Source of the DNA: Phallusia mammillata
Taxonomy: Eukaryota
Assembly: GCA_965637545.1 (NCBI GenBank)
Contig: OZ281494.1
Coordinates: 12,152,001 to 12,216,000, forward strand
Length of the DNA stretch: 64,000 bases
Direction: 5' to 3'
Made by a program: the position numbers and the translations under genes. The notes under the pieces were generated by a model. It was not told where the DNA came from. It did no database searches and worked only from the letters and a program-made list of their open reading frames with translations. Positions 53,801 through 56,800 of this stretch are shown here, in pieces (position 1 is the first letter of the stretch; the number at the start of each line of letters is the position of its first letter).

Positions 53801-56800
53801 GTACTCGTTTTGCGAAACAAAGTTAAATGAAAAACAATTTGTTATGTATACACTTGTAGCAAATTGCTTTTTAATTTAAAGTGTCTGTAACACAACTGTT
53901 ACAGCTTTCCAAAAAAAATGTGTTCAAAACCCGACCTTGGACGACAATATCTGGGTCAAAGCAAGAGATTAAATTAAAGTATTTGTTACATTTTTTAATG
54001 TTTTTGTAATTATATGACAATAATAGTGCAAAAAAATACGAATTTTTTTATTGTTGGGTTAATGCTTTCTAAAAATTTGTCCTTAAGAATCTAAAAATCA
54101 CCGCAACATTTGTTTACTGTAAATCCGCACAAACGCACGTGTGGGGACCCATTTGTTTTTGTTTACAAAAACAATCATATGTGTAGATCAAATAATGTGT
54201 ATAGTAAATTGGTAAATATCATATAGAATATATAAAGTGGAAGTATATCAGAAAGCCACTCTTCTAGTTGCAAATGTTTTGGTACCGTTGTGGCAACTGT
54301 TTGCTACTGATATGGATTAACATTCAGCTTAAAAAGAATCTATTGATAGTATACAACCGTATTTGCGGTGAAAGACGTGACTCTTAAAATTCTTTTGTGA
54401 CGTTAATTTGTGTACTTTTTGCACGCGGCCCAGTAATACAGGTATACTGACTTCACCTGATTATCGAATCTTCATAAACTCCCTTAAAAAAATCTTGGTC
54501 TTTCGAAATTGTTTTTTTGACTGTATGACTTCCCCTTTTGACTAAACCTTTATCATTTATATAGCATTACCCTATCGGCCTTCGAAGTCACCAACTTCCA
54601 GTCGGGTTGCGCCACCAAGTAGTCTTTCGTACACCCTGGATGACCGGGCAATGATTGTATTGTCATGGCAACCACCACTTGGTGTTGCGGAAGACGCTAT
54701 GCTCGGATATTTGGTGGAATACCGCGTGGTAGAAGGAGGTTTGGAAAACGAAAATGAAGACTCTAACAGCAGGAAGAAGAGAGATGCTTATTCTAAATCG
54801 TCCATATACTTCCGACAGAAAATCACATCCGTAGCAAGTAGTGAAATTGTGGAAAAAGAAGAAAAGGTTCAAAAAATCTCCAACGCTGCACCAGTTTTCA
54901 AACAGGGCAGTTTTTCGTTCCTAAGATCTTTGATTGACAAAGCCAGAACCAATAAACTTCCTTCAAAACAATCGGAATCGTTTGCCAAAAATCTCTTACG
55001 AAAAAGAAGAGGTATTGAAAACAAAACAACTGGAAGAAAGAGCACTGTTCGTGTGATTCAAAGTGATCCAGGAAGCGAGGATTGGCTTGCATCCGGAAGA
55101 TGGAAGATACTTGCTGCTCTTCCATCCAACGTAACCTCCTACAGAGTTGACAACGTCTTTCGGGATGCCAAGTATCAGTTCCGGGTTCTCACGGTGTCTC
55201 CCACGGCCTACAGCGCCCCAAGTGCCGCGATGACCGTGGACACACACGGTATGTTTAGAAGAAGTTTTTTCACATCAGCTCCCGACTTAGAATCAGTTTC
55301 AATTGGTCATTTTTTACAATTACGAAATCGTATTTGAAATTACCGAAAAGAATTTATTTTCTGTTAAATTAAATTTGAAAAACGAATCTTAATTTTTTTT
55401 CTACAAATTTTGTTTTCCAATCCTTGCAGGTATGACGTCATATGGGTTGATGTCGTCATCCAGTTCATCTAATGACATCAGTGCTGGAGCCATCGCTGGG
55501 ATTGTCCTCGGTTTACTTTTGGTTGCTGTGCTTCTGTCTATCACCGCTATTGTGTGCCAACAAAACCAAAGAAGAAACACCGGTAGGAAAAAAAGAATCA
55601 GTCTCTTTTCTATATCTGTAATTTCTCAAATGCGAAATCGTTTGTTGGGTGTTTAAAACATTTATGATAAACAAAGAGCAAATAAAACTGAAAAGGAAAA
55701 TAATATATTACAAGTATACTGAGCAAAAAGATACCAGTATTTGACTGTAAAACGTCAGGCTGGTATCTTTTTGCTCAGAATATTTAGAACCGCGCATTGT
55801 GTACTTAAATTACAACTATACATTTGCTTTTGCAATGACTGATGATGTCACTTATTTGAGCGAAGTCGAAAACAATTTACGATCAGATATAAACAGACTG
55901 ATTTAAATGTAATGAAAGTTTAAGCTGCTATGAAAAGAAAGCAGGTCTAAACTATAACTTTTACCAGGAAATGAAACTAAAATCAAATTAATTTAATCTT
56001 GTTAAAACAGGACTGCAAAAGACAAGCTATTTGGACGAAGCTGACGCCGAAAGGTGATGATACAATAACTTTCGATTTCGATTTATTACCGAAACAGATT
56101 TTTAATAACATTCGGTGTGTGTTACATGAGATTAGTTTCGATTTTAACCGATTTCACGCAGCATAAGGATGGGTTTCATTCGGTCTTCGGCGCGAAATCA
56201 AAGCTTGTTTTTATAGGAGACTTTCTGTTTGCGTAAAATGGCGCATATTAGACTAGAAATCCAGAAATTCGAAAAAGGCAACGAAGCCTTGGTTAAAAAG
56301 AAGACGCAATATGCTTAATAATCTGACCTCTAAATACGAATTATATACTTAATGCGTTGTCTATCGTTGTGCACATTGGAGAGACAGGAGCCTATTGGGG
56401 GTTTTATTTTTTTATTTTACAAATATTTGTATTACTGCGTGTTTTCAAAACAATGTAGTACGAGCAAAATATTGGCTTCTTGTGTTGGCTGTTCGTAGTC
56501 ATAAACTTTTTATTGACCAAAGGTAATCGAAGAGTTTTTCCTTATTAAGCTTATTAATATTAAAGCTCACTTTTGTTGATTCTGTATTGTTTTGACTTCG
56601 TTCCGCAACAAACTATCCAAATTATATGTTCAACAACATGCGTTTTCAATATTGATTAATGATTACAAAAAAACTGCGCAGACAATAAGCCCACGTGGGA
56701 AAACTGCTCAAGCGTAACCCAATCCCCAAACCCTTTAATCCACTTTACATTGAAACATACGAAGGGAAACGGATGTACCGCCCTACTTAATCCATTAAAG

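Follow-up and report, generated by a model that had tools for sequence, protein, structure and literature searches.

Sites for furin-type convertases in gene B

Do two furin-type sites inside one fibronectin type III (FN3) domain mark a hidden peptide precursor, or a receptor built of two chains? The question is raised by gene B, a receptor gene of the tunicate Phallusia mammillata, which shares a 64,000-nt stretch of genomic DNA (the window; GC content 38%, introns bounded by GT..AG, zero N) with its paralogue, gene A. A sequence-only reading of the window had proposed that the sites RKKR and RKRR in FN3-2, the second FN3 domain of gene B, flank an excisable peptide, so that an adhesion receptor might double as a peptide precursor. 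Our analysis pointed, with moderate confidence, to convertase processing that yields a two-chain receptor of the IgSF9/Turtle family joined by a split FN3 domain, not to a hidden hormone precursor.

Both sites were read directly from the sequence, and their coordinates and spacing (Table 1) agreed with the earlier account: they lie in frame within the open frame 54546-55334, (54999-54783)/3 = 72 codons apart. The intervening peptide has a computed mass of 8.1 kDa and a computed isoelectric point of 9.85, in line with the earlier prediction of a basic peptide near 8 kDa. Shuffling the residues of the gene B loop gave at least two R-x-[KR]-R motifs in 1% of shuffles.

The sequence-only reading had named removal of the loop by splicing as a risk, and this was checked in RNA contigs from three studies (X6, X10, and X8). 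The contigs joined 52714 to 54565 and 55248 to 55430, each linked six successive gene B exons, and since the exons were joined at GT..AG they derive from RNA. All three sets covered 54565-55248 without a mismatch or an internal joint, keeping the exon uninterrupted; the loop is retained in the dominant gene B mRNA.

AlphaFold2, supplied with 13 aligned homologues, placed strands on both sides of the insert (those after it at exon residues 180-186, 191-193, 202-210, and 222-225), with predicted local distance difference test (pLDDT) values of ~80-97 in the core; the Pfam fn3 model matched exon residues 16-60. No secondary structure was predicted within the insert, spacer included. Because the model has no strands between residues 56 and 180, the insert is, as modelled, a disordered expansion of the loop between strands C and C' (C-C' loop) in an otherwise normal FN3 domain. 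The length of the insert, given before as 124 residues, was 125 when counted from EYR at the end of strand C to the invariant Trp of C', and 123 by AlphaFold2. This Trp (Trp179, just ahead of strand C') was invariant in the tunicate alignment. The transmembrane helix lies in the next exon, which puts the loop on the lumenal or extracellular side. RNA contigs and AlphaFold2 together therefore upheld the description of the R-x-K/R-R motifs as lying in an expressed, unspliced, exposed and flexible extracellular loop of FN3-2.

As to the origin of the insert, genome-copy and self-repeat searches gave no sign of a transposon or a tandem duplication: the loop DNA occurs once in the 240-Mb genome, and its internal repeats do not exceed 14-nt chance matches. 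A Pfam GLTP match in the loop (E = 0.007, 17 bits vs. a cut-off of 25.6) was rejected as chance. Just past strand C', an N-x-S/T sequon at exon residue N188 (N-V-T, ~55128-55136) was present without exception in the 13 tunicate FN3-2 sequences, and for this reason N188 probably carries a conserved N-glycan adjoining the loop.

Gene identity and architecture

An exhaustive HMMER search matched the gene B exon at 100% to residues 276-502 of a 1285-aa protein (P0001), which UniRef and nr label 'Protein turtle homolog A' of Phallusia mammillata. A second protein of the species, P0125 (1605 aa), mapped exon by exon onto gene A at 90-100% identity. P0125 matched vertebrate 'protein turtle homolog A/B' (IgSF9/IgSF9b) with E-values of ~1e-118 to 1e-75, at 30-33% identity over half of its length and with an identical set of Pfam domains, and genes A and B were 43% identical over 352 residues from Ig4 to FN3-2. 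On these grounds, the sequence comparisons identify the two genes as tandem paralogues of the IgSF9/Turtle family. The architecture of that family was found in full, from five Ig and two FN3 domains through a single transmembrane helix to a long cytoplasmic tail: gene A exons map by domain, gene B has the paralogous exons, and Ig and fn3 Pfam matches were obtained. As the earlier account had stated, gene A has a single site, RTRR, in the corresponding loop.

The P0001 entry begins at a Met inside an Ig domain (window 50494-50990), whereas the X6 contig reaches 1177 nt upstream of position 50990. Either the entry lacks its true N-terminus, then, or it represents a short isoform.

Conservation of the insert and its site

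The homologues compared were P0001, P0125, ten short open reading frames (ORFs) covering the FN3-2 exon in ENA/Logan genomic contigs, P0126, and the full-length Styela clava protein P0130, which came from a word search. P0042 holds only the C-terminal half, and its loop was not scored; P0126 is a near-duplicate cluster member. The loci of three ORFs show adjoining Ig and FN3-1 exons, which assigns these ORFs to genes of the IgSF9/Turtle family.

In every tunicate sequence that covers the loop (13/13), the C-C' insert was 31-125 residues long and held one or more strict R-x-[KR]-R motifs. Apart from the site, the loops could not be aligned with one another and differed fourfold in length, and several (P0082, P0050, and Styela P0130 among them) were acidic overall aside from the site; what is kept among homologues is the site and not the loop around it. 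A MAFFT alignment placed site 2 of gene B in the K/R-R column of most homologues and of the RTRR of gene A. The probability of obtaining a site by shuffling was 0.03-0.16 per loop, giving a summed log10 of −14.7 over 12 loops, a value that overstates the significance since the sequences share descent and are not independent. By comparison, nine vertebrate IgSF9/9b proteins showed a gap across the tunicate insert and no basic site there; in the five whose C-C' loop was read directly, it had 4-6 residues. Because all 13 tunicate sequences have the insert with its site and the nine vertebrate proteins are without it, the insert with a convertase site looks like a tunicate innovation. From the sequences, it also looks older than the A/B duplication, and it is probably older than the divergence of Phallusia (Phlebobranchia) from Styela (Stolidobranchia).

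A tree of the FN3-2 core was built from 16 rows, 11 tunicate and 5 vertebrate, leaving out the partial sequences P0105 and P0042, and P0126 (a near-duplicate of P0036). It set tunicates apart from vertebrates (100/99) and did not separate A-type from B-type sequences, for which reason the orthology of P0130, P0031, and P0016 to gene B rests on the neighbouring domains. It is moderately supported by the FN3-1 sequences of these three, which were 56-77% identical to B-type vs. 38-46% to A.

Two strict sites were found in four homologues: Phallusia gene B (RKKR/RKRR, spacer of 72 residues), Styela P0130 (RSKR/RAKR, 9 residues), P0031 (RSKR/RKKR, 35 residues), and P0016 (RSKR/RLKR, 6 residues). 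A weaker fifth pair occurred in P0109, where KKRR stands beside RNKR with a spacer of 5 residues. The RSKR of the B-type sequences P0130, P0031, and P0016 occupies an N-proximal place in the loop comparable to that of site 1. P0013, P0017, and P0036, with one strict site each, grouped with P0016 in the core tree (94/98), and pairing, as judged from the sequences, is hence recurrent in the B lineage and not universal. The spacers share neither sequence nor length, with the exception of an NLL-RK(K/R)R context common to Phallusia gene B and P0031. The expectation that orthologues would keep both sites and the sequence between them thus held in part: at least one site is present in all 13 loops, while only four have two strict sites and the intervening sequence is not conserved.

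In the loops of one clade of homologues, P0016 (locus L005, 6001-6537), P0109, and P0036/P0126, a single Cys (DKC or IKC) stands a few residues before the furin site, with no partner Cys in the domain. By analogy with the insert-domain Cys of the insulin receptor, it could form an inter-chain disulfide.

Proposed processing and alternative explanations

From the observed sequence, expression and site conservation, the computed fold topology and disorder, and the presence of convertases, we infer cleavage of the loop, use of both sites in gene B, and association of the resulting fragments. The conserved content of the tunicate-specific insert is a proprotein-convertase site, and a furin-type convertase would cut this loop, either within the trans-Golgi or on the cell surface; at least four loci of the Phallusia genome gave PF01483 convertase P-domain matches above cut-off. 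The N-terminal chain would then comprise Ig1-5, FN3-1, and strands A-C of FN3-2, and the C-terminal chain strands C'-G of FN3-2, the transmembrane helix, and the tail, with the two held together non-covalently by the already folded FN3 sandwich. Since its two sites look equally good, Phallusia gene B would probably be cut at RKKR and RKRR alike, with loss of a linker of 72-76 residues. The linker would most likely be a lineage-specific expansion between the sites, whose counterparts in relatives are separated by 5-35 residues, rather than a conserved peptide with an activity of its own. Once cleaved, the ectodomain could be shed or rearranged.

The association of the two halves was addressed by co-folding P0001 276-347 with 424-502 alongside three controls. 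The ipSAE (interaction prediction score from aligned errors) was 0.54 vs. 0.03 for the best control, the runs agreed in at least 84% of contacts, and partner pLDDT was at least 59. The result was rated as weak support: 51 solved complexes out of 78 attained the mark, as did 2 mismatched pairs out of 108, and at values of 0.60 or below it was attained by only 5 of those 78 complexes and all 4 mismatches that passed. The suggestion that the split domain is held by strand complementation agrees with what is known of L1, Tractin, and SAX-7, and has weak support from the in-silico co-fold.

Several points weigh against the two-chain receptor. Cleavage of the gene B loop is a prediction from sequence, and the co-fold signal, itself weak, may simply reflect a model recognising an FN3 domain. 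The RNA data consist of contigs, with which a minor isoform that splices out part of the loop would be compatible. The homologues are largely ORFs from ENA/Logan contigs, which makes the count of independent lineages uncertain. A lineage-specific function of the 72-residue spacer is possible, and the N-K-T sequon next to site 2 could impede cleavage if glycosylated.

The same sequon, if it blocked site 2, would favour use of only one site, or tissue-dependent use, with the spacer staying, in the manner of the insulin-receptor ID-alpha and ID-beta, as a disordered tail of the N-chain or a leader of the C-chain and nothing released. Most homologues, gene A included, have one strict site, and the insert of the insulin receptor stays on both of its chains, where the alpha-CT segment before RKRR is functional (PMC3747439). 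Against this, both gene B sites fit R-x-K/R-R equally well in a shared disordered loop, and the sequence favours neither; we consider retention of the spacer unlikely.

Double cleavage might, on the other hand, serve to free the basic peptide of ~8 kDa as a signal or an antimicrobial, or to remove a mask that covers the receptor until excised, as in ENaC; to us, this appeared somewhat less plausible than retention of the spacer. RKKR and RKRR do flank 72 residues in a secretory-pathway ectodomain, as in a prohormone, and two tetrabasic sites arose in only 0.09% of shuffles of the gene B loop. Paired sites recur among B-type homologues, the spacer has stayed an expressed open reading frame, and multi-site polybasic cleavage activates ENaC by freeing inhibitory tracts (PMC8791634). 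The peptide sequence, however, is not conserved in homologues. A search of 1.84 billion representative proteins for relatives of the spacer returned, below 1e-30, only P0001 itself, and an Atlas search with the 72-residue spacer gave no usable match. A word search with P0001 region 262-520 found only P0001 itself; one with the exon alone gave no match, a result that does not amount to absence since the length band leaves out full-length relatives. The spacers elsewhere have 5, 6, 9, and 35 unrelated residues, most homologues, gene A among them, get by on a single site, and the spacer bears no marks of maturation: no Gly for amidation (it ends in NLL before RKRR), no Cys, and no predicted structure. 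The proposal of a peptide precursor is accordingly weakly supported. A removable linker or pro-segment is possible, as is an ENaC-like inhibitory tract or a free peptide, the latter two lacking comparative support. The stronger form of the idea, in which excision of the segment is a regulatory event that unmasks the receptor or frees an active 8-kDa peptide and B-type pairing is a conserved 'cut-out' device, we regard as doubtful. The 72-residue cut-out specific to Phallusia would be a side issue to the two-chain receptor unless it proved functional.

That the loop goes uncleaved, its basic clusters serving heparan-sulfate binding, forming a basic patch, or merely reflecting a composition rich in K, R, and S, would fit the 26 K and R among 126 residues and the ~16% of shuffles with one R-x-[KR]-R, but is very improbable given the strict motif in 13/13 loops that are otherwise unrelated, range fourfold in length, and in several cases are acidic aside from the site.

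Other features of the locus

The coordinates of the features are collected in Table 1.

Table 1. Features of genes A and B in the window, with the basis of each assignment.
Feature	Position in window	Strand	Basis or details
Gene A FN3-2 exons, with an intron inside the loop	17965-18205, 18693-18889	+	P0125 confirms deduced splice
Gene A RTRR, sole site, in 44-residue C-C' loop of FN3-2	18704-18715	+	P0125, 99-100%
Gene A C-terminal exons	~24301-25274		
Gene B Ig1-3 exons	~37712-49101		Paralogy to gene A exons
Gene B exon with whole FN3-2 and insert (684 nt; P0001 276-502)	54565-55248	+	AG/GT boundaries, RNA contigs
Strands A-C of FN3-2 (exon residues 18-56)	54618-54734	+	AlphaFold2, residues 18-24, 30-35, 47-56; pLDDT 85-95
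Disordered C-C' insert (exon residues 57-179)	54735-55103	+	AlphaFold2, pLDDT ~43-51
Site 1, RKKR, followed by D	54771-54782	+	Codons agg aag aag aga; P0001 344-347
72-codon spacer between sites, DAYSK to AKNLL	54783-54998	+	P0001 348-419
Site 2, RKRR, followed by G	54999-55010	+	Codons cga aaa aga aga; P0001 420-423
N-K-T sequon, four residues past site 2	55020-55028	+	Sequence; glycosylation putative
Strands C'-G of FN3-2 (exon residues 180-225)	55104-55241	+	AlphaFold2, pLDDT 91-97
Transmembrane helix, in exon 55430-55582	55483-55557	+	Translation, exon junctions
Gene B cytoplasmic tail exon	Open frame 59618-61126		Long open frame
Gene B C-terminal exons	~62055-62162 and beyond		

The C-C' insert is interrupted by an intron (18206-18692) in gene A, whereas in gene B a single exon spans the whole domain. 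P0105 (L006), a possibly A-like ORF, also begins within the loop, which suggests that the intron is typical of the A lineage.

Many short RNA contigs, with a summed depth of up to ~1600 in X10, covered 52741-54332 in the gene B intron between FN3-1 and FN3-2. They carried mismatches and loose ends running into other sequence, and the pile-up suggests that the intron holds a repeat or transposon fragment that is expressed and present in many copies. At position 56011, all three RNA contig sets had A where the assembly has G, changing GGA (Gly) to GAA (Glu); P0001 also has Glu at this codon (...RRNTELQK...), which points to either a polymorphism or the assembly base. The last ~130 residues of the cytoplasmic tail were conserved at 35-38% identity among Styela P0130 and the two Phallusia genes, the other parts of the tail being divergent; judging from this alignment, the conserved end may be an unannotated C-terminal domain.

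Comparison with known systems

Convertase cleavage within an FN3 loop is a mechanism of a known kind, and the claim of an undescribed system was not sustained. What appear to be new are its occurrence in the IgSF9/Turtle family, the location in a membrane-proximal FN3-2 with a long insert, and a double site excising a long segment. No paper linking IgSF9 with ascidians was found in a literature search.

The nearest homologues are vertebrate IgSF9/IgSF9b (Dasm1) and Drosophila Turtle, members of the family to which genes A and B belong. In the nine vertebrate proteins compared, FN3-2 differs from that of gene B in having no insert and no convertase site there.

ENaC alpha and gamma resemble gene B in that two convertase-type sites flank a segment of an extracellular loop, although ENaC is an ion channel and not an adhesion receptor. 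Its tracts have 26-43 residues and a demonstrated inhibitory role.

Closer parallels are offered by the L1 family, neural adhesion receptors of Ig and FN3 domains that, like gene B, have a basic site inside an FN3 domain. Cleavage of the third FNIII domain of L1 gives fragments of 140 and 80 kDa (PMC6403279). SAX-7 of C. elegans is cut at RWKR in FnIII#3 and occurs mostly in the cleaved form, the two fragments together rescuing function, and the furin fragments of leech Tractin interact and support adhesion only together (bioRxiv 10.1101/2021.01.25.428117). L1-family fragments thus stay associated and act together, as we would expect of those of gene B. The family differs in having 6 Ig and 5 FN3 domains, in being cut in FN3-3 rather than in the membrane-proximal FN3, in its short loop with no ~120-residue insert, and in its single site or close dibasic cluster, from which no long piece is excised.

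The insulin receptor carries an insert domain of ~120 residues with the furin site RKRR in FnIII-2 (PMC3747439, PMC7039211). In it and the IGF-1 receptor, as in gene B, an FN3 domain is split by a disordered insert of ~120 residues with a tetrabasic site; in these receptors, cleavage leaves two chains that share one FN3 domain, as is proposed for gene B. The insulin-receptor insert, too, lies in the C-C' loop. In contrast to gene B, the insulin receptor combines L1-CR-L2 domains with a kinase and carries another FN3 domain before the membrane, and its one site leaves the insert on both chains, which are disulfide-linked, whereas the FN3-2 exon of gene B is without Cys. Membership of gene B in the insulin-receptor family was considered and rejected, there being no L1/CR/L2 region and no kinase; the proteins are unrelated, and the likeness is therefore one of convergence.

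Should the predicted cleavage be true, IgSF9/Turtle would be the third family to reach the solution of L1 and the insulin receptor, independently in tunicates and by an insulin-receptor-like route, a disordered insert in the membrane-proximal FN3 domain, with the vertebrate sister group lacking it. The family would then offer a clean natural comparison between cleaved and uncleaved IgSF9, in embryos (Phallusia and Ciona) that are easy to electroporate, and would be relevant to the tuning of synaptic adhesion molecules through shedding or rearrangement of their ectodomains.

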